From: Basidiobolus meristosporus CBS 931.73
Taxonomy: Eukaryota; Fungi; Basidiobolomycota
Assembly (NCBI GenBank): GCA_002104905.1
Contig: MCFE01000751.1
Coordinates: 1 to 39,313, forward strand
Reading direction: 5' to 3'
DNA: 39,313 nt
This document shows positions 1 to 39,313 of the stretch, one piece after another (within the stretch, counting starts at the first letter, position 1; each line of letters starts with the position of its first letter). Under the pieces are notes generated by a model that had not been told where the DNA came from, made no database searches, and saw nothing but the letters and a program-made list of their open reading frames with translations. Both the position numbers and the translations under genes were made by a program.

Positions 1-779
1 ACCCTGGGTTAATCAAAACTAAGAAAAAACTAGATCTAATTCACTCCAATCTGTTTGGACCTATGCATAATTTATCCTTAGGTGGGATGAATTATTTGAC
101 ACTTTAATTGATGATTATACAAGATACACATGGGTCTACTTCATGGAGAGAAAGGAAGAAGCTCTGTCAAACATTAGGGAGTTTAAATCCATGGTGGGAA
201 GAGAAAATGATAAAAGAATCAAGAAATTATGCTCTGATAATGGCTGAGAATATTGCTCAAAACTCTTCATCCACTTCTGCAAAATTCATGCCACAAAGCA
301 AGAGACTACTGTACCATACTCCCCACAGCCAAATGGAGTGGCAGAATGTGCAAATAGACCAAAAACTAATATGCAGACAAAGTGGAGAACATACAAAAAT
401 ATCTGGGTGTACAGCATATGCCAAGAAACTGTCCAGAAATCCGTCAAAATTTGAGTCAAAAAGTCAAAAATGCATATTTTGGGATACTGCAATGAGATTA
501 AGACATACAAACTCTACAATACCAAAGCAAAGAAGCTGATCAAGTTCAGGAATGTGTTGTATGATGAAAATCAAATTTTCGCAAAAAATGACATTATATT
601 ATGACAAAAATCTGATCTCAAATCCACTGATAGTCAGGATTGAATCAGAGTAAAGCAATGAAAACTATTTTACTCCAGATAACTCTACAACCATGGCTCT
701 GCCTGAGTTGGTGTCTAGGAATATCCCAGAAGTGGTCATTCCAGTATCACAAACCAGGAGATCCAACCAGACCAGAAAT
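1..779 (+). mobile_element. Ty1/copia (family C1) remnant: integrase core plus integrase-RT linker, frameshifted
   Basis: Broken frames give LIHSNLFGP, IDDYTRYTWVY and TPQPNGVAE, typical copia rve motifs. 610-779 is homologous to the reverse complement of 2780-2948 and to 17330-17500. Confidence 0.85.
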
Positions 780-1129: not shown

Positions 1130-2948
1130 CTCCCACTCAGCTAAATGTTCATACTGACTAGTCCTAATTTTGACCTAAGATATTCAAACTTGTCTTTAGC
1201 TAATGATTTGGTAAATATGTCTGCAATTATTTCATCTGAAGGATAGTAAACTAAGCTGACTAAGTGATTCACTATAGCTTCATGTATGAAAAGATGTCTA
1301 ATATCTATGTGCTTAGTTCTAGCATGAAAATTGAGTTTTCTACCTAATTCTATACATCCTTGATTATCTTGAAATATTGTAATAGGCATTTTTTGACATT
1401 GGCCTAAGTCTGTAAAAAGCTTTCTTAACCTCATTGCTTCTTTTTTAGCATCACAGACTGTCATATACTCTGCCCTTGTGGTCAAAAGTGCTACAGTTGG
1501 TTGCTTTCTTAAGTTTCATGATATTGCTCCTTGACAGTATAGAAAGGTGTATCCTGTGGTGGATCTTCTATCTTCCAGATTTCATCCCCAACCAGCATCA
1601 GAGTATCCTACAAGATCCTGCTCTAAATCCTTATAAGTGTATCTTAAGCAGATATCAGCATTTCTATTTAGGTATCTAAAAATCCACCTAACTGCTGCAA
1701 TATGATCAGATCCATAGTTCCGATTATGTTGGCTGACAACTCCCACTGAATATGAGACATCTGTACATGTTCCAAGCATGATATACATTAGACTGCCAAC
1801 CATAGATTGATAAGGAAATTCAGAGCTTTCAGATGGCACCAAGCTCTCTTGATTTGATTGAGTTTTGACCAAGTTAAGGTTTGTCTCCATTGAGGTAGCT
1901 GCCGGTTTACAGTCTTCTATTTTGTACTTCTTTAGTACATCTTGAATATACTTGGATTGGCTTAGGGTGAAAGACTGGGTACTTCTGTCTATGAAGATCT
2001 CTATCCCTCAGTAGTAACTGAGTTCTCCTAGATTGGACATCTTGAACTCCTTAGATAGGCTGGATTTAGTTTCTTCCAATTTTGCTAGATTATTGGTAGC
2101 TGTAATATAATCATCTTCACATAGAGCTAATAGAGCTGGACTTGCTCTATCTTGCTTATAGTATATACAATAGTCAGCATTACTCCTTTTAAAGCTCGGA
2201 GATTCCAAATAAGAATCTATCTTGCAATTCCAGGCTCTGAGCAATTATTTGAGACCATATAGAGAATTTTAAAGTTTGCAGACCAAATAGGGATTATCTT
2301 GGTCAAAACACCCATTAGGCTGGTCCATATACACATCCTCATCATGTTCTCCAATCAAAAATGCAGCTTTCACATCCTTGTGATGAATCAAAACTTATAT
2401 CTGGCTGCATTAGCCAATGTTAATCTGATGGAATTAAACTTGGCTACTGGTGCAAAGGTCTCAGTATTGTCAAGTCCTTTTGTTTCAGAGTATCATTTGG
2501 CCACATGTATTGCTTTGTATCTTGCAATTGTACCATCAGCCTTGTAGTTTGTCTTGAAGACCCACCTTCATCCAATTGATTTTTGGTTGATTGATGAATT
2601 GACCAAGTTGCAAGTTTGATTTTCCATCAGGGCCTGATATTCCTCAGTCATTCCAGAACTCCCAAACTTTGTCAGAGGGCTATTTAAGGCCTCATTTACA
2701 GTCTGGGGTTGATCAATATGGACTGAATAGGCATAGGCTAAGTTTGTACCCTCATTAATATAATAATTTGGGCTATTTCTTGTCCAATTGGGTCTCCAGG
2801 CATCTGATACTGGAATGATCACTTCTGGGATATTTCTGGGCACTGATTCAGGCTGAATCACAGTTGTAGAGTCCTCTTGAGTGAAAAGAATTCCATTGTT
2901 TTGCTCTGATTCAATCCTGACAATTGGTGGACTTAAGACCTAATTTTT
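1130..2948 (-). mobile_element. Ty1/copia C1 RT-RNase H pseudogene
   Basis: Minus ORFs carry FPYQSMVGSLMY, LVGYSDAGW, a degenerate YVDD (LALCEDDY), HARTKHIDIRH and IADIFTKSL, with many stops and frameshifts. Confidence 0.95.
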
Positions 2949-3085: not shown

Positions 3086-4065
3086 GCTAAGGCTGCCAAT
3101 AAACTGAATCTCCTCAGATATTCAATGTATGCTCTAACCCCACTCTGGAATGACTAAATAGTAGAGCTTCTGCTTCCTGCTAAGCACACCATTCCTTGGC
3201 TTCCTATAAGCTGTAGTACATCCTAATCTCTGACAATCCTCTCCTCTATAAGCCAAGTCTGCCATACATTTCTCCCCTCTACTGAGTTCTGGATGATTCT
3301 CTACCCAGAGTGCTTTGCCATGCCTACTTCCAGCAAATGGCCCACTAAACCAGATGATGTTACCCTCAATGTCAGACAGTGCTTGAAACTTCACACAGTG
3401 TGCCTTGTACTTACCACAATAAAAGTGCCTCTGCCCTCTAGAAGGTCTGTTAATCCTGACTGGGAAGGTATCCAAAATACTCCTTATATGGAACTTGTTG
3501 CTGAACACTCTGGGATATAGAAGTCTATTGAAGCTTCTAAACCTAGTACTCCAAGCTTGCTCTAAGTCATTCATACCCTCTGCATGGTGGTTCTCCATTG
3601 CTGTCAGCTGGGAATGAAAGCTTCTAGGACTTTTGTTGCCATGTATGGTGGGATGAAACCTTGTAGGGTAATAGTTATTGTGATAGCAGAGAAACTTAAC
3701 AAGGGATCTCCTTGAGTAGATAGGGGTAGATGGACCACAGTACTTGGTATAGATCTCCTCTAGTGTGTCAAAAGGAAATCCAGTGGTAATGATGGGATTG
3801 ATGAGAAAAGACCATTCAGATGAGTAAGTCATATTCAAATTGGTAATGATTGGGCTGAACTGATTTGATTTGATTTGGCGCAATCAGCTTTATTTATCTC
3901 ATTTTCCATGCATTGTGACTAAATCTCCATCAATTGCCATGTATCCCATCATTATGTTGCAAAAATCATCCTCAAACAATGACTGGGTTTTTGTTTTGAT
4001 GCTTTACTCACAAGTCTATAATCAAATAGGAAATCTGCAATTGATGTGATCTGATCCATGTCAAT
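3085..4065 (-). pseudogene. PIF/Harbinger-like (DDE_Tnp_4 family) transposase pseudogene, copy 1
   Basis: ORF 3134-3883: ILDTFPVRINRP...YCGKYKAHCVKFQALSD...FSGPFAGSRH...MADLAYRG...YRKPRNG matches the DDE_Tnp_4 layout. The frame continues upstream through stops to about 4065. Homologous to 24535-25400. Confidence 0.8.
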
Positions 4066-5359: not shown

Positions 5360-8335
5360 TGCCAAAATATGAGACTACTTGGTATTATTCAGCAGCTAAA
5401 AGCTTACTTAAAAGCTCTGGACTAGTTGAAGTTGCAGTACCACTAGCTTAGAGCCCTAAATTAGCCACTTTCTTTCAGATCCGTGATCCTAGGATTGTAT
5501 CATAGTTGATAGTTTTTTTAGGTTCCTAGATCCATAACACTTCTCAAGTTGCAAGAGGAAAGCCTCATTTGCCTTAATCTACTCTTAACAATGACAGCTA
5601 TCTGCCAACAAAGTAACAAAGGTATCCTCTCTGCAAAGGAGAGGCTTGATTCAAAGACCTACAGACTCTGCGGAATCTAGAAGAAGATCCACCTTAGAAA
5701 ACAATGATATGAAATGTAGTAACAGGAAAGGAAATTGAGCCCATAATAACAGCAGAAGAAGCTTAAATATCTTAAGAGAAGGATTGAAAAGTTGTTAAAG
5801 CCATATTTATCAATATGCAAGATTCCTTCATTGGGCAAGTCCATGCTTCTAATGCTACCAAAGCAGCATGGAAATCCTCAGAGATGATCTCCAGAGCAAA
5901 GTTGGTATTAAGCAACCCTTAATTATAAAAAAAGCTTTTCTACATGAGGGTGAAGCCAGAGGATGAGATGCCTCAGCTGATTATCAGAATGAAGAGAATT
6001 GCACAAGAGCTTTAAGCTTTAATGTGGATATAGATGTTGAAGTATATAATAGCTGTCTGCTTTGCAAATAAGACAAGTATGTGCCACTCATACTTTCTGT
6101 TGAAAGCAAAGAAAACAATCTGACATAGACTTTATCAAAGGAAGACTACCCCAAGAAGAGCTCAGACATAGTGACCAATCACAGAATGCTCAAGACAATG
6201 CTTTATTCAGAGCAGAATGACATATAGAAAGAGGGAAAGCAATACAGCCACAGAGAACATGGCTGCTGTAACTACTCCAAGTAGCCAGGATCAAGGACAA
6301 GGAAATGCAAGAAAAAGAAGCAGACAAAAGACCAAAATTGGAGAATACAAACCATATAACTACAAATGAACAGTTATTTGAAACTGCACAAAAGTGCGCA
6401 AGCAACAGCAATAATGAATGATAAATTGATTTTAGAGCAGCACATCATATTTGTGGTACCAGGGGTTGGCTCAGCAGCTTGAAGACTTTTCCTCAAAGAA
6501 AGGCTTATTGGAGATTCAACTCTGCACTGGAAGCTACTGCCAGTAGGCTTTTACAGCTAAATACAAGTGATATCTCTGGGGTACAAAAGCAAGACCAATT
6601 GATGTATTCTACATGCCTGCAATAGCTAAGAACTTATTCTCAGTGGATAAAGCAATTACTCAGGGGCTGTGATTTGTTTTAACCCAGCAGATCTTCTGAA
6701 TATTGAGTGAAAGTGGTCAATAATCCACTTTTGGAATCAGAGATTACAACTTATACAAGTGGTAATGCTAGAAAATTGTACCTATATTGGTCAACATTGC
6801 TGAAACTGATGAAGTTTAGTGTGAGTTATGCAATCAAAGGCTGGGAAATAATGGGAAACAGAAAATGAGCCAATGTGTGAAAATTCAGTTCTTTTTGACT
6901 CAACAACTGCATTTCAATCCTATTCAACATCTGTAAGGGATGCGCATATGACAAACAAGCTACAAGTATCAGATTTTCTAAAAATTATTTACTTCACTAG
7001 TTTCTGATAATTTGCTGATATCTTACAAACTGATTTCCCAGCAAGTAATCTGAAATGTGTGATTTAATTAAGTGCTAGTTGAGAATACATTAAAAATTAG
7101 GTGGACACCTAGCCATTTCAACAGGACCCTTAGAAAAATGTGCTTTGGAGCCAAGAGATATTACACAACTGTTCCAAGGAGTTTGCAAAGTACTGTTCAC
7201 CTACTGGTATATGTCAGCCCACCACTGTACCACAAATTCAACAGCAAAATGGAGTAGCTGAACATGCAAATAGGACTTGAATAGAGATGGCAAAATGTAA
7301 GCTACATACAATGCAAATAGACAACATTTGTTGGGCTGATTCTGCTGCTACCACACTATTCATTGATAGTAGATGTCTCACAACAGTATCCCAAGATTTT
7401 ACGCTCTTTAAAGCACATATGGGCAGAAACACAGACCTCCAGCACTTGATGATCTTGTGTAGTGATTTCTTCTATCAAATCCCTGACAAATATGCTCAAA
7501 TTTGGGTCCAAAAAGTAGAAAAGGGATCTTTCTTGGCTATTGGGAGGATACTCAATATTACATATTGTATGAAGGTAAGCTTGGAAGCTATCAAGAGCAG
7601 CAGCATTGAATTTGAGGATAAGTTGGATCAGAGAGCTAATAAGACTATTGCTAGCTGCCTGATGATGCAAGCACTACTAGTCCAGACCAAAAGCAGAAAG
7701 CTATGCTTAATCAGTCCAATTATATTATAGGCATTCTTAGATGCTTGATAATTCCAATAACTGAAAGCTGTGCTGAATCTGTCTAAGTATATCATGGGCA
7801 TTCTTGGATGCTTCAAGTTGGCAACTTGCAAGCCTTCAGCAACACTAATGGACATAAACCTAAATTTGAGCAAATCTCAGCCAGCAGTAGATGTAAACAG
7901 CTCAAATATAGGCCAGAACTTTCCCTATCTATCAGTTATTGGTAGTCTGATGTACCTGATGATATTTACATATATGAATAGTGCATTGGCAGTTGCAATA
8001 ATCATTCAATTAATACACAACTATAGTTCTGATCAAATTAGAGCCAGTAAGCATATTTTCAGAGATCTACAAGTTGTTTTAAATATGGAATTGGAATTCC
8101 CTGAAGCAGCTAAAAAGCAACGATATGATTTTTATGGTGATTCAGATTTGGATGGGGAACATATTGACAGATGTCCACCACTGAGCATTTGCTTTTACCA
8201 GCTGGTGCAGCTATAACCTGGAATTGCAATCAACAATCAACTGCGGCTCTCTCCACGTTTTAGACAGAGTTTATGTCCAATTGTCAAGCAACTATGGAGA
8301 CTATATTGTTGCAAACTTTAATCAAGGACTTAAGT
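5360..8335 (+). mobile_element. Degenerate, internally deleted Ty1/copia (family C2): partial 5' LTR, gag, PR, IN and RT/RH pieces
   Basis: 5360-5555 aligns with the reverse complement of the LTR at 14206-14574. Downstream sequence aligns with the gag/pol of 9893-14574 (FPYLSVIGSLMY, FYGDSDL). Confidence 0.8.
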
Positions 8336-10261: not shown

Positions 10262-13200
10262 CTCCCACTCAACTAAATAATTTCTGAATCCTAATTCCTC
10301 TCTGAGATTCTCAAATTGAGGCCTAGCTAGTGGTTTTGTCAATATATCTGCCACCATTTTGTTAGTTGGGCAGTACACTAACTCTACTAATCTATTTTCT
10401 ACAGCTTCCCTCACAAATTGATGTTGTTTATCAATGTGCTTAGTTCTGGCATGATTAGTAGGATTTCTAGCTAATGAAATACAACTTTGATCATCCTTGT
10501 AAGCACATGTTGGTTCATCAGAACTACAACCTAAGTCTTTGAATAATTTTTGTAGCCATATAGCCTCCTTAATTGCTTGACATGCAGCCATATATTTGTC
10601 TTCAGTTGTAGATAGGGCCACAGTTGCTTGTTTCTTGCAATTCCAAGTAATATCTGTACCAGCATAAAGAAATACATAGCCTGTGGTAGAGCGTCTGTCA
10701 ATCAGATCCCTACCCCAATCTAAATCACTTTGACCATCCAGTTTTTGCCTATTAGCTGCTCCAGAGTATTCCAGTACCATATTTATGGTACCTTGTAGAT
10801 ATCTGAAAATCTACTTAACTGCTGCAATTTGATCTGATCCATAATTCTGCATGAATTAACTGACTATTCCAACTGCCACTGCAATATCAGGATGTGCAGA
10901 CACCATCAAGTACAATAGGCTACCATCCGTTGATTGATAGGGAAAGTTTTGGTCCATATTTGAGCTGTTTTCATCTAAAACTGGCTGAGATTTGCTTAAT
11001 TTTGGGTTATTGCCCATAGGGGTAGCTGCAGGTTTTCAATTTTTTATTTTGCAGTGTCTAAGAATGTCCCTGATGTACTTAGACTGATTCAGCACAGTTT
11101 TCTGCGTAGGTATGTCAAATTTGACCTCAATTTCAAGAAAATAGCTCAATTTTCCAAGATCTTTCATCTCAAACTTGCTGAAGAGATCTGATTTTGTCTG
11201 TATAAGTGCATCTTAGTCACTTAAAGCTATAATGAGGTTGTCCACATAAAGAACTAGGATAATCACACCATTTCTGAGCTGTTTCACATATACACTGTGA
11301 TCTGCAGTGCTACAAGAGAACCCAATTTCCTCTAAATATGTGTCAATCTTGTTATACCGTACTCTGGGTGCCTGCTTAAGCCCCTACAACAATTTTCTAA
11401 GTTGGCACATGTTATGGGGTACTTTGGGATTGGTAAAGCCGTCTGGTTGCTCCATATAAATTGTTTCTTGCAATTCCCCATTTAGAAAGGCTGTTTTGAC
11501 ATCCATTTAGTGTAGATCTACACTGTGTACAACTGCCAGGGCTAGAACTGTCCTAATGGAGTTAAACTTAGTAGCTGGAGCAAATGTTTCCTTAAAGTCT
11601 AGTCCCTGGAACTGGGAATAGCCTTTAGCCACCAATCTAGCCTTGTACTTATCAACAGCACCATTTGAGGTTATCTTGATCTTGTAGACCCATCTACATC
11701 CTATTGGCTTTCTCCCATTTGGTGAATCTACCAGTTCCCACGTTTTTGCCTTGATCAGTGATTGGTACTCCTCCTGCATGGCTTGTTGCCACTTAGTGGC
11801 ATCTGGACCTTGCATTGCCTGTTCCAGATTCTGAGGTTTGGCACATAAGGCAAGATGAGCTTCTTCATGATCATTGGATGTCTGCCACCAGGATCCAGGG
11901 GCATTTCTTATTGTGGTAGATCTCCTAACTGGGATAATCTATTCTGATCTGCAACTGGTAGAAGTATCTTCTGTATCTGGCTGGATTTGGTACGTATCTT
12001 CTTCATTAGTGTTGATTGCATCATCAGGCAGCTGGGCAATGATTTCCATGGCTTTCTGATCTGAACTCTCCTCAATTACAATTTCCCTGCTCTGGATCAG
12101 CTTCTGAATATTGCCATCATACACTCTATACCCTTTAGTATCTTCACAATACCCAAGAAAGATCCATTTCCTGCTCTGTGGTTCCAACTTTGAGCGTTTT
12201 TTGTCAGGGATGTGATAAAAAACATCACTACCAAAGATCTTAAGGTGCAGGAGATCTGGGTTTTTGCCTATATATGCCTCAAAGAGTGTAGAATCACATA
12301 GTGCTGTTGTTGGGCATCAGTTCTTGATGTATACAGTGGTAGCAACAGATTCAGCCCAAAATCTGTAGTCCATTCCCTTATCATGTGGCATAGATCTTTC
12401 CATCTCTACTATTGTTCTATTTGCATGTTCTGCTACTCCAATTTGCTGTGGAGTATGAGGACCTGTGGTCTGTTGAAGTATACCAGTAGACAAGCATTAT
12501 TTTGCAAGCTCCTTTGAGCAGTATTCTCCTCCATTGTCACTTTGCAGTACCTTTGATTTACACCCAGTTTGTGTTTCTGCCATGTTCTTAAAGTGCTTAA
12601 ACATCTCTGACGCTTCATCCATTGTTTTGAGGAAGTACACCCATGTATATCTTGTTTTGTCATCTATAAACGTCATAAAGTAGCTCTTAGCTCCAAAGGA
12701 TAGTGTTCTCATGGGGCCACATATATCTGAGTGTACAATAGCCAATATTATGGTGGTATTGATGCCTTCTGAGCTCTTCAAATGTTGCCTGGCTTGTTTG
12801 CCATATGAACATCTCTTACAAACAATCAATTTGATCGGAATTGAGTATTTCAGGCTCAAAACAAGCTGATTTTTCAACAATTGGCTCATTTTCTGTACTC
12901 CAATGTGTCCAAGCCTCCTATGCCATGTCTCCCAGTTGGTTTCATCAGTTTCAGTAGTGTTGACATACACATGTACAATGATCTTGCATTGTAACTTGTA
13001 TATATTGTGATCTCTGATTCCCAAAGCTAATTTTGGTCCATTCTCTCTCAATATTGAGCAGCTCATCTTAGTAAACACAAATTTCAGTCCCTGAGCAGTT
13101 GCTTTACTGACTGAGAGTAAGTTCTTAGCTATTCCAGGTACATAGAGTACATCAGTGAGTCATACTGTAGTTGCCCCTGAGCCATTGCTCATATTTAGTT

Positions 13201-23539: not shown

Positions 23540-24050
23540 ACAAAAATTCTTTGTCCCAAAGATGCTGCCAGGATTAAAAATGAAAAGTTTAATTTGCAGA
23601 GTTACCCTGCTGGTGGATGAAATGGAATCTGTAGGTGTACCAGCTACTGATGAGGATGTGATAGTTACCATCCTGAGTAGCTGGAAAAATAAGTTTCAGG
23701 GCTTTGTATCAGCCCTAGAGCCTAGAACTGAAGATTTGAGTTTGAATCATATATAGGGAAGGCACCTGGATGAAGAATTAAGAAAGTCAAGTGCCAATGA
23801 GAAGGAATAAGATGATGCTTTAATAAGTTATGATGACCAACAAGGGAGGTACTGAAAACCCTTCAAAGGCAACAGCAATCTGCTTTGGAGCTACTGGAAA
23901 TGGAAAGGACACAGATTAGACCAATGCTTCAACAAGAGAGACAATCAGCAAAAGAAGCCTGAATATGGAAATGCTTCAATGACAAAAGCAGACTACTTAT
24001 GTCTTCCCTGCATATGACCACAAACAAAGATTCTCAGATGTAGTACATTA
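23540..24050 (+). mobile_element. Ty1/copia gag fragment
   Basis: LVDEMESVGVPATDEDVIVTILSS...FVSALE resembles the copia gag (UBN2-type) core, followed by a CWSYWKWKGH knuckle remnant. Confidence 0.7.
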
Positions 24051-24534
24051 GACTTCTTCCATTGGATAGTGCCACATAATGCTGGCCTGTTTAAAGTATC
24101 AGCTTTATCTGTCACTCTATGGCACTACCTGGCATTCTAATCTCATTATGCCAGTGGTAGAATATAGTTACTGGAATTTTTACTCAATCCTGCTTATGTT
24201 GCTCAGAAAAGTGCTTTTCTTGCTTTACTTATTCTTTGTAATGCTCCGGACATGTTTCTCTCAGTAGAAGTCTTCTTGTAGGAAATATACTGTACTTTAA
24301 AAATATCTTGACTTTTTTACCTATTCTGCTGTTTTCTCCTATATATGACTTTCCTCTGTATTTTCCTGCTAATATGCTGAATCTCTTAAGATATCCAAGT
24401 GTTTGCTCTGCTCTCATGCTGAAGTGATTAACATCTCATTGTAGTGCTTCTGCTAAGCACAACATTCCTTAGATTCTTATAAGATGTAATACATTCTACT
24501 CCCTGACAATTCTCTCCTACTTAAACTAATTCCA

Positions 24535-27359: not shown

Positions 27360-29480
27360 TTTGCAGCTGCAAATTGACTCTGGAGCATCTCAACACTTTG
27401 CACAAGAATAAGAATGTTTTACCCAATTTCAAGAAAATGCAATTAAGAAGGTTTTCATGGGTGACAATAGAACAATTCATGAACTAGGAGAAGGGAGTAT
27501 CCAAGAAAACCTTAGAAGTTGTGAAGGGAACTATACACGGACTTTTGAAGAAGTTTGCCATGTACCAGAGAAAGCCATGAACCTACTATCTATAAGCAAG
27601 CCCACAGCCAAAGGATACAGTTTCAGCTTTGCTAATTCTGGATGCATGATCACTAATCCAAATGGTGCCCATCTTGCTTTGGGTATCAGGGATTGGAACC
27701 TGTAATATTTGACATATATGCCATCATATCTGGAAGCCATTATAAGTAACTTGAATGAAGGAACACCAATGCTTTGGCACAGGAGATTTGAGCATATCAA
27801 TTTGATCATTTGTGCAAAATGATCATGGATCAGCTAATTTCTGAAGTAAAAACTGCTCCGTAGCTAATTTAGAGTACTGTGAAGCCTGAATACATAGAAA
27901 AAAAGCCAGACTACCATTCAAGACCTCTAGATTAGTCAATACTAAGTAAAAATTAGATCAAATACACTCAGACCTTTGCAGACCTATTCAAAGCCTGTCC
28001 TTTGGTGGGATGTGGCATTTACTCACTATTATTGATGATTATACAAAATACACTTGGGTTTACATCATTGAGAGAAAGGATGATGCTCTGTCTAGGCTTA
28101 GGGAGTCTATAGCCATGGTGGACAGAGAAACTGGTGAAAAAATCAACAAAATACACTCTGACAATGGTAGAGAATAGACTTGTTCCGTTGGGCAGTGCCA
28201 CATTGAGCCATGAGTGCCAAATGATGCCATAGTGTGCCAGACAGGCCAAGTGAGCCTCTAGCTGGCCACAGAGTGTGAAACATAGCTTTGCATCTTCATG
28301 CAAAGCAGCCCCTGTGTTTCACCCATTGTGTAGGAGAAAATCCATTTTTTGACCTTTTTTTTTGGATCAATGTTGTGCAGGATGTGTTGGAGCACAAAAG
28401 AATTGAAGATATGCATCTGGTACTCAATACCCATGGCACTCTGAATCTAGCTCCTGTAGCTTGTATCATGTCACAAAAATGAATGGCACCATCTTGGTCC
28501 ACTGGTACTATCTGGCACTATAAGTGCTTTATATTGATCTTACTTTAGGTCTAATATTTAAATATAGTGCCAGATAGTACCAGTGGACCAAGATAGTGCC
28601 ATTCATTTTTGTGACATGATACAAGCTACAGGAGCTAGATTCAGAGTGCCATGGGTATTGAGTACCAGACGCATATCTTTAGTTCTCCTGTGCTCTTACA
28701 CATCCTGAGCTACATTGATCCACAAAAAAAGGTCAAAAAATGGATTTTCTCCTGCGCAATGGGTGAAACACAGGGGCTGCTTTACATGAAGATGCAGAGC
28801 TATGTTTCACACTCTGTGGCCAAGTATAGGCTCACTTTACCTCTCTGGCACACTATGGCATCATTTGGCACTCATGGCTCAATGTGGCACTATCCAACAG
28901 AACAAGTCTAATATACAGCAAAAAAAAGACTTCATATTTGAACAGAAAACTTAATGAGGATGTGTATACAAATCAGCCTGATGGGTGTGCTGACCAAAAT
29001 AACCCCCATTTGGTCTTCAAACTTAAAAAAACTCAATATGGACTCAAACAATTGCCAAAAGCCTTGAACTGCAAAATGAATCTTATTTGGCATCCTTGAA
29101 TTTCATAAGGAGTAATGCTAATTATAGTATGTGCTATAAGCCAGATAGAGCAAGTTCAGTTCTATTAGGTTTATATATGGATGATCTTATTATAGCCACC
29201 AATAACTTAGAAATTTTGGAAGAGACTAGCTCCAGCCTATCTAATGTGCTCTAGATGTCCAATCTAGGAGAACTCAACTACAACTTGAGGATAGGGTTTT
29301 CCATATATAGGAGTATGCAGACCATCACCCTAAGTGTATCCAATTATTTATAAGATATACCAAAGAAGTACCAGACGGAAGACTGTAAACTGTCAGCTAC
29401 CCAAATGGAGACAAGCCTTATCATATGAAAAATGAAATGGTCCATTGGTGGAACAAATCCAGGTCAGCTGTCAAGATCCT
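27360..29480 (+). mobile_element. Copia C1 pol remnant (PR, IN, partial RT), interrupted by the foldback element and internally deleted
   Basis: IDSGASQHF, LWHRRFEHI, IHSDLC, IDDYTKYTW, SDNGREY, then KTSYLN...QPDG, YGLKQ, LYMDDLII. Confidence 0.9.
28176..28909. mobile_element. Non-coding foldback (palindromic) element, copy 1, 734 bp
   Basis: 347-bp inverted arms starting AGACTTGTTC around a 40-bp loop (28523-28562). TSD AAT/AAT. Removing the element and one TSD restores the integrase motif DNGREYTAK. Confidence 0.95.
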
Positions 29481-29944
29481 ATTAGGAGACTCTCAAAATA
29501 CCAACAGCTTGGAACAAATGACCATTCTCACAATCTTATGACATGTTCACAACAGCATGTAGCTAATTTTAGTGCCAAATAAAGTTAAAAAGCATAATGG
29601 TGTTTAAGCAGTGTTCTACCAAGGGTGGCATGGCATTGTTGTGGTCTCAGTGTGCTCTTCAACTATGTGAGTGGATTTAACTGGCCAGTATATCCAATTG
29701 CCTTATCTGGTAAAAACTTGATGGTGTTTTGATGACCTCATTCTAAGCCTCTGATGGTATTATGACGGTGGCATGGTGGCCAACAGCTAGTTCTGCATAA
29801 TGCTACCATGCCAATTTACCAAATGGTGTTCCCTTTTCTATGCCCCCTTGCATAATTCATATACTCTGCTGTAGAATCACCCATCATTTTTGCTTACCCA
29901 CTACTATCTTGGGCATTCCACATATAGCTCAACTCAAAAAATAA

Positions 29945-30833: not shown

Positions 30834-30992
30834 CTGCAAAGGTTCTGAATTGCCTACACAGCTGAGAGCCTGAGGAGTCTGCATTATTACCTTCAATGGG
30901 CACACTGTCCACAGGGCCTTTTTTGGATGTAGCCCTGCTTGTTGTACTGAGTGTCAAAGCAAGCTGTTGTCCAAACATTCTTCTGTTGCCAT
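30834..30992. repeat. Unit of a degenerate ~159-bp tandem repeat, left of the gypsy
   Basis: Aligns with 38184-38255 plus 38992-39077 once the foldback is removed. Confidence 0.8.
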
Positions 30993-32071
30993 TGTAGTGG
31001 GGTCACAGTGACACCCACAGGCAGATGTGCTCATTCTTATGCGTTCACTTCCCTAAAAAGGATTACCCCGCCTATATTATTATCATCCCAAATTTGCAAT
31101 ATTTCCTATTTTTGTCTATGTGATTATTACTATGCAACCTGACAAACTATTTGTCACTATTAACCCATTGCACAAGCTATTCTTATTCCTTGCCGAGATG
31201 CCAAGATAAGATAGTTACCTTATAAGGCATGTACCCCAACAGTGCCCATGTCACGCGACCATCTTGGTTTCATAATCCCCCATCTCACTACCATAAGAGG
31301 CAACCACATGACACAGAGGTTTCATGTTACCACTACCTGATTGGCTAGGTGCTACTATGTCTCATGGAACAATCCGCCAAGAGTTTGCGCTATTTTTAGT
31401 ACACAAAGACATGATTGGTTGTCTACTACCTTCTGGAAACTTCCGGAAAGTATTTTCTAGCAAGAAATTGAGCAGCAAAAAAGTATATAAGGGAGGCTAT
31501 CCCTTAAAATAAATCATCCCTCTTCCAATATTCCGACTTATTGATTAGTGAGATCACCGCTACCTATTACCACTATTTTCTGACTCAGACCTGACAACAC
31601 TCCCAGGAAACCGCGCTGACAGCCAACTGACCTTGGAGGCACTACTTGTGAGGAATACTCAGAGTAGGTATATTTTATTATATTTGTTTGTTTTCCCAAG
31701 TTTGTTCTTGTACAGGCAAAGATACTTTTCAGTCTTTGTAACTATTGGTCAAAGCTGCATTCTTATCAAGTCCCTGTTGGTGGAGTTTACAGTTGTTTTG
31801 ACTTTGGAAGCTTTAGTACATTGTCATCTCAAAGGACGTCAAAGCCATTATAAACTTTTGTTAAGACGCCAACTAAGTTGGGGATTGTAGTTCAATAGTT
31901 TTCCCTTGACAAGCTTGAGGCTTTATCCCCCATCACATTAGATTAGACAAAAGACCCAGTATTCCTAGCAAGCTTTTGCCAGAGGTTATCGCACCCAGTG
32001 AACACCCCACACACATTCACACTTGAGAAGTGTTGGCCGTATTTTGCCCTTTGGACTTATACACCACCACA
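30993..32071 (+). repeat. 5' LTR of G3
   Basis: Differs from the 3' LTR by 3 C/T substitutions and 6 single-base homopolymer indels. Confidence 0.98.
31484..31490 (+). promoter_or_regulatory. Possible LTR TATA box
   Basis: TATATAA in mid-LTR, with AATAAA about 20 bp downstream. Motif only. Confidence 0.3.
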
Positions 32072-32075
32072 TAAT

Positions 32076-32092
32076 TGGCACCCAACGTGGGG
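32076..32092 (+). other. PBS complementary to tRNA-Lys(CUU)
   Basis: TGGCACCCAACGTGGGG versus the canonical Lys1,2 PBS TGGCGCCCAACGTGGGG (one CpG-type change), 4 nt after the LTR. Confidence 0.85.
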
Positions 32093-32212
32093 GGGTTCAT
32101 ACAAGCTCCCTAGGACCCAACAAGATTTACCTGAAGATTTGAGCCGTTACCCATTTATTGAAACAAGACTACCGATATTATCAAGACTATAACACCAACC
32201 TACCTACCAAAA

Positions 32213-34063
32213 ATGAACTCTATGCCGTTACCACTCTCACATGGAGCCCCACAGTTTGATGGAAAGAATGTGGAGAGCTTCATATTCAAATGGGAGAAGC
32301 TCTGCAAGATGTGCAGCCTATCTGAACAAGAAATGGCTGAAGACTTCCCCTACTACTGCACCGATGATATTACTACTAAGCTTCTCAGACAAGGAGACAT
32401 TCTGACTGACTGGACCTCAATGAAGACCTACCTTCAGACCGAGTATGGCAGACCCCAGATATACTATGGAATTGAGGACCTCAGACACTTTGGAAGGATG
32501 GGACTCTCCAAGCTACCACTTGAAGAGTTCATTCAACAATATGAAGATATGGCCAAGCCACTCCTAGAGTCCCAGGCAATAACTGAGTTTACCATGACAC
32601 TTTACCTTGCACAAGGGCTTCCCCAGGAGCTGGCAAGGAAAGTTGACCTACATGCAGCCAAGGATGACAAGTCTGGCATTCCTTGCTTTGCAGAGATGAA
32701 ACGTGTACTCCTAGAGGCAAAGCAAACTTCTACCTTTATGAGACTCCTGACATCTAATCTGCCAGACCAGCCAACCAAGGAGCTAAAGAGTGCTGTTGCT
32801 GACAATCAGACCTACACTACCGACAGAATTGACCAACTTGCTGAACAGCTACAAAAGCTAGCCCTCAAGGTTAACGGCTCAGCTGAGGTAGCTACTGAGG
32901 GCCAAAGAGCTTTGCCTAGACACTGCATTTGGTGTGACTCTACTCAGCATGCCAGACGTGAATGCTCAGAGCTTAGCCAGCTACTTAGAGAAGGAACAGT
33001 ACAGTTTGATGCTGATGGAATGCTTGCTGATAAGGAAGGAAAAAGGATTCCCACTAATTTCCAAAGAGGTGGAATGAGAGCCCTTTTCCAGAAGTCTGAC
33101 TCAGCAACTAGAAAGATTACTGTTGATGCCCCTATTGAGACTCATACAGTGAGTCCAAACAGCCCTGACAACAGAAAATACGAAGTAGACACCTTTGCTA
33201 CTAAGAGACACCTTCCTGAAGAACCTGTCAAGCCCATCCTTAGAAGACCACGATTTGAAGAACCTGAGGTTATCATTGACAAGAGGCCTGGAACACTGCC
33301 CACCCAAGACCCATTACCTCACTTTCAGATGACCTCAAAGATAGCAGGCTACTCAAGCCCCCAATTGATTACGGAGAAATTGTTGAAGCAGAACCTCACT
33401 TTGTCAGTTGGAGAAATCATGAGTGTATCACCGTCTGTTAGGAAGACCTTTGATGAGCAGCTTAGAACAAGAAGACAAGCTGTTGAACATATGGACACCC
33501 ATATAATCCAGACAAACCATGAAGACCACAAAAAGGGTGACACCACTACCAAATACAAGACGTTTTACTCAGTTGCAACTGCTGTGGTGAAAGGGTACAT
33601 ATATGATGACCCTGTTGACTGCCATATTGACAGTGGTTCAGAGATTTGTGTTATGCCGCTAGACTTCTGGAAGACACTTAGAAGCAAGGAGCTACTGCCT
33701 GTTGATAGAGATATTGGATGGAACATGACTGATGCAAACTCAGGGTCTAGCCCACTCTATGGTGTAGTGCACAAGTTCCCTATTGAGGTACAAGGAATCA
33801 AGGTCTGGCTTCCCCTCTTTATCTGCCAGAAGGCAAACTTTGACCTTCTGTTAGGCAGACCATGGGAGACCAGTACTAAGGCTACAACTACCAACTATTC
33901 TGATGGGTCAGTGTGGTACACTATACAAGGATCCAACCCAGGACTACAGTCAACATTCTGTGGGGTAACACCCAACAATAAGAGGACACATACCGCTTGC
34001 CAGAAGACACATCTTGTTATAGAAGAAGATGAGGAGCCTGACAGTATACACCCTAACAGTTAG
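32213..34063 (+). CDS. Gypsy Gag plus aspartic protease (616 aa)
   Basis: APQFDGKNVESF, CIWCDSTQHARREC zinc knuckle, HIDSGSEIC protease, FDLLLGRPW. Confidence 0.9.
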   Translation: MNSMPLPLSHGAPQFDGKNVESFIFKWEKLCKMCSLSEQEMAEDFPYYCTDDITTKLLRQGDILTDWTSMKTYLQTEYGRPQIYYGIEDLRHFGRMGLSKLPLEEFIQQYEDMAKPLLESQAITEFTMTLYLAQGLPQELARKVDLHAAKDDKSGIPCFAEMKRVLLEAKQTSTFMRLLTSNLPDQPTKELKSAVADNQTYTTDRIDQLAEQLQKLALKVNGSAEVATEGQRALPRHCIWCDSTQHARRECSELSQLLREGTVQFDADGMLADKEGKRIPTNFQRGGMRALFQKSDSATRKITVDAPIETHTVSPNSPDNRKYEVDTFATKRHLPEEPVKPILRRPRFEEPEVIIDKRPGTLPTQDPLPHFQMTSKIAGYSSPQLITEKLLKQNLTLSVGEIMSVSPSVRKTFDEQLRTRRQAVEHMDTHIIQTNHEDHKKGDTTTKYKTFYSVATAVVKGYIYDDPVDCHIDSGSEICVMPLDFWKTLRSKELLPVDRDIGWNMTDANSGSSPLYGVVHKFPIEVQGIKVWLPLFICQKANFDLLLGRPWETSTKATTTNYSDGSVWYTIQGSNPGLQSTFCGVTPNNKRTHTACQKTHLVIEEDEEPDSIHPNS

Positions 34064-34342
34064 AGCTGCTCATTAGGTATACAAGAGCAGTCAGCTATGG
34101 TTTGCACAAAATACAAGACAGTGGAACAGAAGATTAGACCATCACTTACGCCTTTAACTGATGGGTCTTGACCTGCTGATTACATCAGACCACCAGAAGG
34201 AACACCAGAAGATATACGACTTACACCTGAGAGACTTAAGCAACTTATCATTGGTGATGGAAACCTAACACCGGAGGAGATCTTACTATTTGAAGAAACC
34301 CTGAAAAGGCATGATAAGGTTTTCTCATATAATGACAAGGAG

Positions 34343-36274
34343 ATGGGACTCTTAAAGACATCGGTTGAAAAACCTACCAAAATTCATACAGTGCCCCACA
34401 CACCCTGGTCATTTAAACCCTACCCACTGCCTAGAGGACTCCAAGCTGATGTGCATGACCTACTTAAGAAGAAGATTGAAGCTGGTATCCTAGAACCTTG
34501 CCATGGACCTTATGCTAACAGATGGTTTGTGACCAAAAAGAAGAATGGGAAGCTCCGATTCATTCAGGACATGCAACCTGCAAATGCTGTCACTATCAGA
34601 GATGCCGCAATACCTCCGTCTACTGATGACTTTGCAGAAAGCTTTAGTGGTCACTCCATCTACTCAACATATGATCTCTACTCAGGATACGACCAGATTC
34701 CCCTAGATGAGACATCAAGAGATATGTTTGCACTCCAGACACCATTTGGACTGTTAAGAATGACAAGACTTAGCCAAGGGGCAACAAACTCCGTGGCTCA
34801 GTTCCAGAGGTGCATGGTAAATGTGCTCTACCGGTTTATACCTGAGAAACTTGCTGTCTTTGTTGATGACATAGGCATCAAAGGACCAAAACTCCGGGAC
34901 ACAACTGAAGTTATGCCTGGAGTAAGAAAGTTTGTCTATGACCATATTTCAGACAATGATGCCATATTAGGAGCCATTGAAGAATCTGGACTCACCATCA
35001 GTGGTGAGAAAAGCAGCTTTGGTGTATCAGAGATATCCATTGTTGGACAAAAATGCAACACCTTTGGTCATTCACCCGGAGACTCCAAGACACAAAAGAT
35101 ATGCAACTGGCCTACCCCCACAAATCTAACACAAGCTCGTGGCTTTGTGGCAGCTTGTGGGTTCTTTAGGATCTGGATCCCAAGATTTTCTGAGATAGCA
35201 GAACCAATCTACCAACTACAGAGAAAGAATGCCCCATTTAACTGGGGAGAAGAGCAAGAAGAAGCCATGCAATTACTAAAAGAGGCCTTAGTATCTCCAC
35301 CAGTTCTGAGACCTCTTGACTATCAGAACACTGAATGCCCACCTATCTTGACGGTGAATGCAAGCCCTGTAGGAGCTGGAGCACTACTTGGCCAAGATGA
35401 TGAAGATGGTAACCGCTATGCCTGCAGATATGAGAGCTGCCTCTTCTCTCCTAGAGAACAAAGATACTCACAGATTAAGAGAGAGCTACTAGGAGTTGTG
35501 AAGATGCTGAGAAAGCTGAAGTCACAACTCTACATGACACATTTCATCCTGGAGACAGATGCTAAGCCACTTATAGGAATGATCAACAAGCCTGATCTAC
35601 CTGATGATGCCACAAATCGGTGGATGGCATGGCTGAAAATGTTTGACTTTGAGGTCAGACATATCCCTGGCAAGACAAATGTTGTGGCTGATGCACTCTC
35701 CAGGAAGGGACCACAGTTGTCTGAAGATATGGACCCTGACTTTGATGACATATTTGATGCAGAAATCCGACAACTACACGTGAAGAAGCCCAGCAACTCT
35801 ACATGGAACACCATTCAAGACTATCTGAGAACCTTAGAGAAGCCACCAGGAATGAGCCCACATGATTTCAGAAAGCTCAGGAAGAAGGCCCATCATTTCT
35901 ACATAAAAGACGGCCTCCTCTTCAAACAAGTAAAGCCTGGACAGACACCAAGAAGAGTTATAGTTGAGCCCCAGGAACAACTGACTATTATGTCAAGCCT
36001 TCATGAAGGAAGACCCAGTGGTCATAGAGGCAGAGATGCCACTTACAATGTTGTTTCCAGTAGATACTACTGGGAGCATATGTATCATGATGTCCAACAC
36101 TTTGTTGAATCTTGTGACATTTGCCAAAGAAGGTCAACCAAGAGATATGAGGAGCCGCTCCATCCAACCTACACACCTTGTCTATGGCAGAAGGTTGGCA
36201 TTGACCTGGTCCACATGCCAACTGCTGGAACCAAGAAGTACCTTGTTGTTGCCAGAGATGATCTGAGTGGGTAG
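34343..36274 (+). CDS. Gypsy RT-RNase H-integrase N-part, in frame with gag; ends at a premature TAG
   Basis: YSTYDLYSGYDQ, LSQGATNS, VFVDD, RNase H with D replaced by N (TVNAS), LHEGRPSGHRG...CDIC, GIDLVHMP. Confidence 0.92.
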   Translation: MGLLKTSVEKPTKIHTVPHTPWSFKPYPLPRGLQADVHDLLKKKIEAGILEPCHGPYANRWFVTKKKNGKLRFIQDMQPANAVTIRDAAIPPSTDDFAESFSGHSIYSTYDLYSGYDQIPLDETSRDMFALQTPFGLLRMTRLSQGATNSVAQFQRCMVNVLYRFIPEKLAVFVDDIGIKGPKLRDTTEVMPGVRKFVYDHISDNDAILGAIEESGLTISGEKSSFGVSEISIVGQKCNTFGHSPGDSKTQKICNWPTPTNLTQARGFVAACGFFRIWIPRFSEIAEPIYQLQRKNAPFNWGEEQEEAMQLLKEALVSPPVLRPLDYQNTECPPILTVNASPVGAGALLGQDDEDGNRYACRYESCLFSPREQRYSQIKRELLGVVKMLRKLKSQLYMTHFILETDAKPLIGMINKPDLPDDATNRWMAWLKMFDFEVRHIPGKTNVVADALSRKGPQLSEDMDPDFDDIFDAEIRQLHVKKPSNSTWNTIQDYLRTLEKPPGMSPHDFRKLRKKAHHFYIKDGLLFKQVKPGQTPRRVIVEPQEQLTIMSSLHEGRPSGHRGRDATYNVVSSRYYWEHMYHDVQHFVESCDICQRRSTKRYEEPLHPTYTPCLWQKVGIDLVHMPTAGTKKYLVVARDDLSG

Positions 36275-37065
36275 GTAGAAGCTCAAGCCCTACCCAATAA
36301 CAAAAGCCACACCATATGGAGATTTATTCTTGAAGATATAATATGCAGATTTGGCTGCATCAGCCAGTTTGTTGCTGACCGAGGAGAACTGACCTCAAAT
36401 TTGATCCAGGAACTCTGCTCACAATACAAGATTCATATTGCTTTCACTACCGCTTATCACCCACAGGCCAATGGAATGGTTGAAAGAGGCCATGGCCCGT
36501 TAGTTAACTCCCTGGTCAAGAGCTGCAACAACACAACACTACAGTGGCCTACACAACTTCATCTAGCACTCTGGGCAGATAGAATCACTACAAAGCGCAG
36601 CACAGGTCTATCTCATTCAAATTGCTTTACGGACATGATTGCGTTCTTCCCATAGAGCTTGACTCAATATCCTGGAACATGCTAGAGTGGAGAACTACAA
36701 TGAGTACAGAAGAACTACTGACTACACGCATCAAACAGCTTGATCACCATGAACTTGATATTACCCAAGCAGCTGCTAAACTCAAAGAGACAAGACTTCA
36801 GAACAAGGAACCATTTGACAAGTCACATAGCCTTAGACCAAAGCCATTACTGCAAGGAGATCCAGTACTGCTCTATGATTCCACTTTAGACAAGCAGTGG
36901 AGTTGCAAATTTGACAATAAGTGGTCTGGCCCATATATGGTCTCTAAGGTGATTGGAAATGGAAGCTACTACCTGTCTGAACTTGATGGAACACCGCTAA
37001 GAGCACCTGTGGCAGGAAACCGACTTAAGCTATTCAAGCACCGGAATTTCGCACATCACATTTAG
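36275..37065 (+). pseudogene. Integrase core and C-terminus, split by a stop and a 1-bp frameshift
   Basis: VADRGE, TAYHPQANGMVERGH, a frameshift near 36612, YGHDCVLP, KWSGPY. Confidence 0.9.
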
Positions 37066-37090
37066 TTTGCTTTGACCTGAGTTCAAAGCT

Positions 37091-37104
37091 GAGAGGGGGG
37101 TGGA
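37091..37104 (+). other. Polypurine tract of G3
   Basis: GAGAGGGGGGTGGA immediately before the 3' LTR. Confidence 0.9.
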
Positions 37105-38183
37105 TGTAGTGGGGTCACAGTGACACCCACAGGCAGATGTGCTCATTCTTATGCGTTCACTTCCCTAAAAAGGATTACCCCGCCTATATTATTATCATCC
37201 CAAATTTGCAATATTTCCTATTTTTGTCTATGTGATTATTACTATGCAACCTGACAAACTATTTGTCACTATTAACCCATTGCACAAGCTATTCTTATTC
37301 CTTGCCGAGATGCCAAGATAAGATAGTTACCTTATAAGGCATGTACCCAACAGTGCCCATGTCACGCGACCATCTTGGTTTCATAATCCCCCATCTCACT
37401 ACCATAAGAGGCAACCACATGACACAGAGGTTTCATGTTACCACTACCTGATTGCTAGGTGCTACTATGTCTCATGGAACAATCCGCCAAGAGTTTGCGC
37501 TATTTTTAGTACACAAAGACATGATTGGTTGTCTACTACCTTCTGGAAACTTCCGGAAAGTATTTTCTAGCAAGAAATTGAGCAGCAAAAAAAGTATATA
37601 AGGGAGGCTATCCCTTAAAAATAAATCATCCTCTTCCAATATTTCCGACTTATTGATTAGTGAGATCACCGCTACCTATTACCACTATTTTCTGACTCAG
37701 ACCTGACAACACTCCCAGGAAACCGCGCTGACAGCCAACTGACCTTGGAGGCACTACTTGTGAGGAATACTCAGAGTAGGTATATTTTATTATATTTGTT
37801 TGTTTTCCCAAGTTTGTTCTTGTACAGGCAAAGATACTTTTCAGTCTTTGTAACTATTGGTCAAAGCTGCATTCTTATCAAGTCCCTGTTGGTGGAGTTT
37901 ACAGTTGTTTTGACTTTGGAAGCTTTAGTACATTGTCATCTCAAAGGACGTCAAAGCCATTATAAACTTTTGTTAAGACGCCAACTAAGTTGGGGATTGT
38001 AGTTCAATAGTTTTCCCTTGACAAGCTTGAGGCTTTATCCCCCATCACATTAGATTAGATAAAAGACCCAGTATTCCTAGCAAGCTTTTGCCAGAGGTTA
38101 TCGCACCCAGTGAACACCCCACACACATTCACACTTGAGAAGTGTTGGTTGTATTTTGCCCTTTGGACTTATACACCACCACA
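37105..38183 (+). repeat. 3' LTR of G3
   Basis: Direct repeat of 30993-32071. Confidence 0.98.
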
Positions 38184-39120
38184 CCGCAATGATTTTCAAC
38201 TGCCTACTTGACTGAGAGCCTGAGGTGTTGTATTATTACCTTTAGTGGGCACTATAGACTTGTTCCGTTGGATAGTGCCACATTGAGCCATGAGTACCAA
38301 ATGATGCCATAGTGTGCCAGAGAGGCCAATATAGCCTCCACCTGGCCACAGAGTGTGAAACATAGCTCTGCATCCTCATGCAAAGCAGCCCCTGTGTTTC
38401 ACCCATTGTGTTGGAGAAAATCCATTTTTTGACCTTTTTTTTGGATCAATATTGTGCAGGATGTATTAGAGCACCAGCAGATTGAAGATATGCATCTGGT
38501 ACTCAATACCCTTGGCACTCTGAATCTAGCTCCTGTAGCTTGTATCATGTCACAAAAATGAATGGCACTATCTTGGTCCACTGGTACTATCTGGCACTAT
38601 ATTTAAATATTAGCCCTAAAGTAAGATCTATACAAAGCACTTATAGTGCCAGATAGTACCAGTGGACCAAGATAGTGCCATTCATTTTTGTGACATGATA
38701 CAAGCTACAGGAGCTAGATTCAGAGTGCCATGGGTATTGAGTACCAGATGCATATTGTCAGTTCTACTGTGCTCTTACACATCCTGAGCTACATTGATCC
38801 ACAAAAAAAGGTCAAAAAATGGATTTTCTCCTGTGCAATGGGTGAAATACAGGGGCTGCTTTACATGAAGATGCAGAGCTATGTTTCACACTCTGTGGCC
38901 AAGTATAGGCTCACTTGACCTCTCTGGCACACTATGGCATCATTTGGCACTCATGGCTCAATGTGGGACTATCCAACAGAACAAGTCTTATGTCCACAGG
39001 GCTTTTTTTGGTTGTAGCCCTGCATATTGTACTGAATATCAAAGCAAGCTGTTGTCCAACCATTCTTCTGCTGCTGTCAGCAGGGGGTTTAGTTGGGAAC
39101 CAGATGATTATGCATTATTT
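38184..39120. repeat. Continuation of the ~159-bp degenerate tandem repeat, split by foldback copy 2
   Basis: Homologous to 30834-30992. A third partial unit start appears near 39092-39120. Confidence 0.7.
38256..38988. mobile_element. Non-coding foldback element, copy 2, 733 bp
   Basis: Arms 346/347 bp, loop 38602-38641, TSD TAT/TAT. The empty site GGGCACTATGTCC has the same length as the paralogous GGGCACACTGTCC at 30898-30910. Confidence 0.95.
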
Positions 39121-39313
39121 CTTGGCAGCATATACATCAAAGTGAGTCATACCAAAGGGAAAATGGTGTAATATGTATATGTGTAAGTGGTGCCACAACA
39201 TTACTTGTAATGCTTACTATGACAGATCAACATTTCATCTTACATTCATGTAGGTGTAATGTTTCGATTGGAAAACTGTCTTGAATTCACATGAGTATTG
39301 ACAAAAATACAAT

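Follow-up and report, generated by a model that had tools for sequence, protein, structure and literature searches.

Two full copies of one foldback MITE were located by BLAST in the window, as the whole 39,313-nt stretch of DNA under analysis is called here (28176-28909 and 38256-38988). Both copies are inserted in the same orientation and share 92% mutual identity. As assembled, the centre of the element is inverted relative to the outer arms between the two copies, which is confirmed here far beyond chance. The best explanation, to which we assign a probability of about 0.58, is that one reciprocal exchange between the inverted inner arms flipped the centre of this non-autonomous MITE, which is probably moved by a Pangu-type transposase. 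This reading is limited to two copies, takes the orientation of the loop from the assembly, and includes one copy (copy 2) whose target site duplication (TSD) departs from the A-N-T pattern.

Polarity of the arms and of the centre

A repeat search identified the arms of copy 1 at 28175-28522 and 28563-28910 (348 nt, 93% complementary, with 40 nt between them). The outermost pair of this repeat, T and A, belongs to the flanking duplication, which leaves 347 nt for each arm proper. Folded as single-stranded DNA, copy 1 reaches -382 kcal/mol, compared with -95 +/- 5 for shuffled sequences (z = -59.5). A 16-nt terminus is identical at all four ends of copies 1 and 2. The element is without a notable reading frame, the longest stop-free stretches being 90 and 66 aa, and no match to an Rfam family was obtained across the whole window. 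With terminal inverted repeats, a TSD with an empty site, small size, no transposase gene and many copies, the element has the attributes of a MITE. The coordinates of its parts and insertion sites are collected in Table 1.

Table 1. Positions in the window of the two foldback MITE copies, their parts and their insertion sites.
Feature	Position	Strand	Remarks
Foldback MITE copy 1	28176..28909	+	734 bp; host is a copia-like integrase reading frame
Outer left arm of copy 1	28176..28403	+	Holds arm-specific markers; mirror 28682-28909; arms differ at 23/232
Inner left arm of copy 1	28404..28522	+	Mirror 28563-28681; nearly perfectly symmetric; putative exchange interval
Loop of copy 1	28523..28562	+	40 nt, 23% G+C; 37/40 to reverse complement of copy 2 loop
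Right arm of copy 1	28563..28909	-	From repeat search and alignment
Left TSD of copy 1, AAT	28173..28175		Right AAT 28910-28912
Empty paralogous site for copy 1	242..258	+	Second copia-like integrase; single AAT at 249-251
Foldback MITE copy 2	38256..38988	+	733 bp; host is LTR-like sequence adjoining a Ty3/gypsy element
Inner left arm of copy 2	38483..38601	+	Mirror 38642-38760; arms differ at 3/116 vs 32/232 outside
Loop of copy 2	38602..38641	+	Inverted relative to copy 1 loop
Left TSD of copy 2, TAT	38253..38255		Right TAT 38989-38991
Empty paralogous site for copy 2	30896..30916	+	LTR-like paralogue; ACT at 30904-30906

The polarity of arms and loop was compared by aligning both copies with their own reverse complements and scoring the columns in which, for each of the two copies, left arm and mirrored right arm disagree. 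Thirteen independent shared arm-asymmetric sites were found, all in alignment columns 12-229 (the outer 232 nt), and their polarity is the same in the two copies at 13 of 13 sites and opposite at none. These sites include TTCCGTTG/TTCTGTTG, CATGCAAAG/CATGTAAAG and GTGCAGG/GCTCAGG, the three motif pairs from which the sequence-only reading had concluded that the outer arms of the two copies lie in the same orientation. Its second claim, that the loop of copy 2 is the reverse complement of that of copy 1, holds as well: asymmetric loop sites have opposite polarity between the copies in 17 of 17 cases, and 37 of the 40 positions of loop 1 agree with loop 2 read as its reverse complement, compared with differences in 27 of 43 aligned columns in the same orientation. 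Same-polarity comparisons of the arms (232 sites each) gave 21 differences on the left and 7 on the right, and the cross comparisons gave 25 and 29. The left outer arms have thus diverged threefold more between copies than the right (p = 0.01), an imbalance that hints at a mosaic history.

The inner part of each arm is far more symmetric than the outer part. Arm differences in copy 1 number 2/116 in the inner zone and 23/232 outside it (Fisher p = 0.004); in copy 2 the counts are 3/116 and 32/232 (Fisher p = 0.0006), and shared asymmetries occur at 0/116 inner and 13/232 outer sites (p = 0.006). The inner arms are symmetric at 97-98% over 116 nt, which is similar enough for recombination of the flip-flop kind. 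Symmetric inner arms combined with shared outer asymmetries indicate that the common ancestor of the two copies already had perfect inner and diverged outer arms. Between column 229 and the loop, neither copy holds an informative site; therefore, the inner arms (about 119 nt each) are the only place left for the exchange, and it had also been placed there from the letters of the DNA.

The inner arms differ between copies at 5/232 sites and lack CpG altogether; in the outer arm of copy 1 there is a single CpG. Because of this low divergence and lack of CpG, it is conceivable that constraint or a low mutation rate, and not conversion, underlies the symmetry of the inner arms. Arm-to-arm conversion since the copies split was considered and found no support in copies 1 and 2, given that mirrored private changes, the expected trace of such conversion, number 0 in these copies.

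Where the diverged outer arm passes into the symmetric inner arm, a short hypervariable segment is found at 28390-28402 (mirror 28683-28695), and contigs of other copies depart from copy 1 exactly at this point, with loose ends at 28397 and 28402. The arms also carry a recurrent motif. GTGCCA occurs three times at the outer end of each arm (element positions 20, 39 and 59), and its inverse, TGGCAC, three times at the inner end (259, 309 and 338), with the same arrangement mirrored in the right arm. The density of the motif is 16.3 per kb in the element compared with 1.7 per kb in the window, and the inner end of the arm is 74-77% like the outer subterminal region over about 40 nt. Each arm therefore resembles a unit bounded on either side by end-like motif clusters, and a second, outward-facing pair of clusters flanks the loop.

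Insertion sites, family and genomic surroundings

Each copy can be compared with a real empty paralogue in the window. When the flanks of copy 1 are joined with one AAT removed, the sequence ...HSDNGREYTAKK is obtained. At the empty site for copy 2, a stretch of exactly 3 nt (ACT) takes the place of the TAT, element and TAT of the filled site. The precise 3-bp TSDs that had been claimed by empty-site logic are borne out by these comparisons (AAT/AAT and TAT/TAT), and together with the empty sites they uphold the further claim of a mobile unit. The TAT of copy 2 conflicts with the family target A-N-T and with the ACT of the empty paralogue; either the LTR copy differed before insertion, or the target rule is loose. 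The copia-like host of copy 1 (27976-29112) is an internally deleted derivative, in which the integrase frame (...DNGREYTAKK) joins, shortly past the insertion site, reverse-transcriptase-like sequence with a paralogue at 2183-2370 (minus strand).

The Pangu group of the PHIS (PIF/Harbinger/ISL2EU/Spy) superfamily is characterised by the TSD 5'-ANT-3' and by TIRs that usually start with AG or GG (PMC4482050). The termini of the foldback element begin with AG (AGACTTGTTC...). Other copies in contigs of the source sample are common up to ...CAAGTCT followed by A, after which they continue with TT.., CT.. and TT.., giving the flanks ATT, ACT and ATT. Set against A-N-T, copy 1 has AAT, the other copies have ATT, ACT and ATT, the empty paralogue of copy 2 has ACT, and copy 2 has TAT on both sides. 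Because the A-N-T flanks of copy 1 and of the other copies in the contigs fit, as do the AG termini, the foldback MITE is likely to be a member of the Pangu group (PMC4482050). It resembles that group in its termini starting with AG and, apart from the TAT of copy 2, in 3-bp duplications of the form A-N-T; it differs in having no coding sequence and in inverted repeats that cover almost all of the element (11-40 bp in Pangu). No autonomous element with the termini of the foldback family was found in the 39,313-nt window. A 249-aa frame at 3134-3883 (minus strand) matches the DDE_Tnp_4 (PIF/Harbinger-type) transposase domain (E = 8e-11), and this fragment has no matching foldback-family ends nearby.

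The abundance of the family was gauged from Logan contigs of four runs of one sample, which were compared with the copy 1 locus. In run X1, 7,778 contigs (>=95% likeness) fall on a 2.5-kb stretch with copy 1, nearly all of them inside the element. Summed contig depth is 2x10^5 to 1.3x10^6 in the element compared with about 50 on the unique flanks, which is a rough indication and no copy count. These values are a sign of a very abundant family. The unique flanks of copy 1, at 27770-28135 and 29185-29647, agree with the contigs (0 differences), and one contig (28124-28221, run X1) spans the left junction of copy 1, also with 0 differences, which shows this junction to be real. A 23-mer common to all four inner arms had zero matches in metagenome, prokaryotic genome and viral contigs, and a gapped pattern of the loop had zero matches in metagenome contigs. 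The only other match to the terminus in the window belongs to a decayed relative of the family at 24050-24163 (about 115 bp), with a left terminus AGACTTCTTCCATTGG preceded by ATT and a right subterminal region 69% identical to the arm; an intact right terminus is absent from it.

Several other elements share the window. The second copia-like copy is split: its integrase sequence lies at 58-400 on the plus strand and, some 2 kb from there, its reverse-transcriptase sequence at 2183-2370 on the minus strand. Either a rearrangement or a nested insertion has taken place here, close to a 174-nt inverted repeat (606-779 / 2775-2948). A diverged large inverted repeat at 7168-8256 / 10608-12522 (74-75% over blocks of 300-400 nt) includes copia-like integrase sequence (12497-13078) and probably represents two retroelement fragments facing each other. 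A Ty3/gypsy element lies within 30836-39191, with one frame of 616 aa at 32213-34063 (DUF4100) and another of 643 aa at 34343-36274 (RT, RNase H and an integrase zinc-binding domain). Its pol ORF has no entry of its own in the protein collection, where the best homologues are only 46-52% identical. For the retrotransposon gag-like protein, the nearest clusters are those of Streptophyta or Basidiomycota. LTR-like repeats flank this element (31944-32071 vs 38056-38183, 98%; 30836-30989 vs the flanks of copy 2, 84%), and, judging by the order in which they match, two such LTR-like units seem to meet near 38185.

Routes to an inverted centre

The transposase that moves the foldback MITE is probably PIF/Harbinger-like (PHIS), of the Pangu type, and supplied in trans from another locus of the genome. 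At some point in the history that separates copies 1 and 2, a single reciprocal exchange may have occurred between the two near-identical inverted inner arms, either as a crossover or as a pair of replication template switches. The loop and the inner parts of the arms would have turned over as one block, and the diverged outer arms would have stayed put. Because both copies have kept their outer asymmetry, two mirror-image breakpoints are needed, as reciprocal exchange gives. A one-way template switch on its own was rejected, given that it would overwrite one arm with the other and so erase that asymmetry. Since the 40-nt spacer hampers duplex pairing of the ~119-nt arms sterically, a replication or repair route is favoured over a classical crossover, and paired template switches in replication or repair would more plausibly have turned the centre. 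Through repair of heteroduplex DNA, the near-perfect inner arms may be both substrate and by-product of such exchanges; their identity would confine later exchanges to the inner zone and leave the outer arms to drift. Two independent foldback births were also considered as a source of the two copies and were rejected, as they could not yield 13 shared arm asymmetries.

The centre could also have been flipped by repair with a mis-paired donor, in which a central break or an excision gap is copied from the sister chromatid or from another copy of the family. The symmetric inner arms would let such a donor pair either way, and in half of the cases the new copy of the centre would come out flipped. 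The near-identity of the inner arms, both between arms and between copies, together with the uneven divergence of the outer arms and the mosaic history it hints at, would be in keeping with this, and abortive gap repair was suggested as the probable cause of an internal inversion in a Medicago element by the authors of that study (PMC2213677). However, the loops still differ at 3/40 positions and are no closer than the rest of the element, two copies allow no donor to be assigned, and two switch points would be needed just as with exchange in place; we therefore consider donor repair unlikely. An error of assembly appears more improbable still, although loop and inner arms form a marker-free segment of about 278 bp that short reads cannot orient, so that its orientation may have been chosen at random. 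The source-sample contigs break into pieces of 60-116 nt in the element, none of which joins a marker (the nearest being 120 nt away) to the loop. Against an artefact, the 39-kb window of nested repeats contains zero N, the unique flanks are identical to the contigs, and across about 230 nt the 13 markers keep a consistent phase in all four arms, an order hardly to be expected from a collapsed short-read graph of a very high-copy family. The loops, moreover, carry minority variants and not the family consensus: the letters of the copy 1 loop at 28531 and 28550 represent about 9% and 1% of depth in the family contigs, and the assembled loop is thus no pasted family consensus.

The motif clusters raise the prospect of a protein-mediated inversion, in which the transposase or a DNA-binding partner would act on the inner GTGCCA clusters as a second, outward-facing pair of ends. 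The three motifs at either end of each arm, their enrichment in the element and the likeness of the inner to the outer end speak for such a reaction; but the terminal TIR sequence is absent at the inner ends, the loop borders show no duplication or loss, and we know of no such inversion reaction for this superfamily, which makes it very improbable. Least credible of all is hairpin-transfer replication, as at the ends of parvoviruses or poxviruses, where flip and flop forms arise through nicking and copying of a hairpin. The element does fold as a near-perfect hairpin. This route would, however, invert the entire palindrome together with the arm mismatches, and it is contradicted by the retained polarity of the outer 228 nt of each arm (13/13); the element is also internal to a chromosome and has TSDs of the cut-and-paste type. 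The sequence-only reading had offered recombination or template switching within the inner arms, or else a hairpin-type replication intermediate. The first part remains the favoured reading, with the exchange confined to the inner arms, and the hairpin intermediate of the parvovirus kind is not supported, as the outer asymmetries are unmoved.

Related systems and the number of flips

Segments that lie between inverted repeats are well known to invert. In plastid genomes and in the spacers of sex-chromosome palindromes, a segment between highly similar inverted repeats occurs in both orientations, and conversion keeps the arms similar. The foldback MITE resembles these isomers in having both orientations of a segment bounded by highly similar inverted repeats; in those systems, however, the arms are of kb to Mb size and both isomers occur at one locus within a population or a cell, whereas here two different loci and arms of about 119 nt are involved. 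Very long inverted arms, a short centre and, in most copies, a lack of coding capacity are shared with Drosophila FB, Galileo and other foldback or hairpin MITEs, but FB and Galileo belong to other superfamilies with other TSD lengths. The PIF/Harbinger element MtPH-A6-4 of Medicago truncatula has an internal region that is inverted in some copies (PMC2213677). It is of the same broad superfamily, and its internal segment likewise lies between inverted subterminal repeats and is found in both orientations across copies (PMC2213677). Unlike MtPH-A6-4, with repeats in the form of 60-bp tandem arrays and a large inverted segment, the present element is an almost complete palindrome in which only 40 nt of unique sequence are inverted (PMC2213677). 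What is particular here is the scale, with 40 nt between arms of about 119 nt, and the setting, a very abundant hairpin MITE with two-zone arms. In a literature search of incomplete coverage, no publication was found in which centre orientation had been tabulated against arm markers in foldback MITEs. Nothing specific on flip-flop in foldback MITEs was found in the literature besides the Medicago case, nor was the terminal sequence of the element.

For two copies that are about 8% apart overall, one historical flip suffices, and the data agree just as well with one old event that divides two subfamilies. Recurrent and ongoing flipping, in a MITE family apparently of thousands of copies, is a tentative reading that we hold to be rather unlikely; under it, the flips themselves would maintain identical inner arms as the outer arms diverge. 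If there was one old flip, the orientation of the loop would be a mere subfamily marker. For annotation, the orientation of a hairpin MITE cannot be called from its loop alone, and short-read assemblies may orient such loops arbitrarily. If the flipping is real and recurrent, it would explain the two-zone arms, perfect near the centre and diverged outside, and would provide many independent natural trials of exchange between repeats of about 119 nt that lie 40 nt apart, otherwise a topic for engineered reporters. In that case each copy would amount to a small element with two states, and the family to a genome-wide natural record of the frequency of strand exchange between short, closely spaced inverted repeats in this organism.
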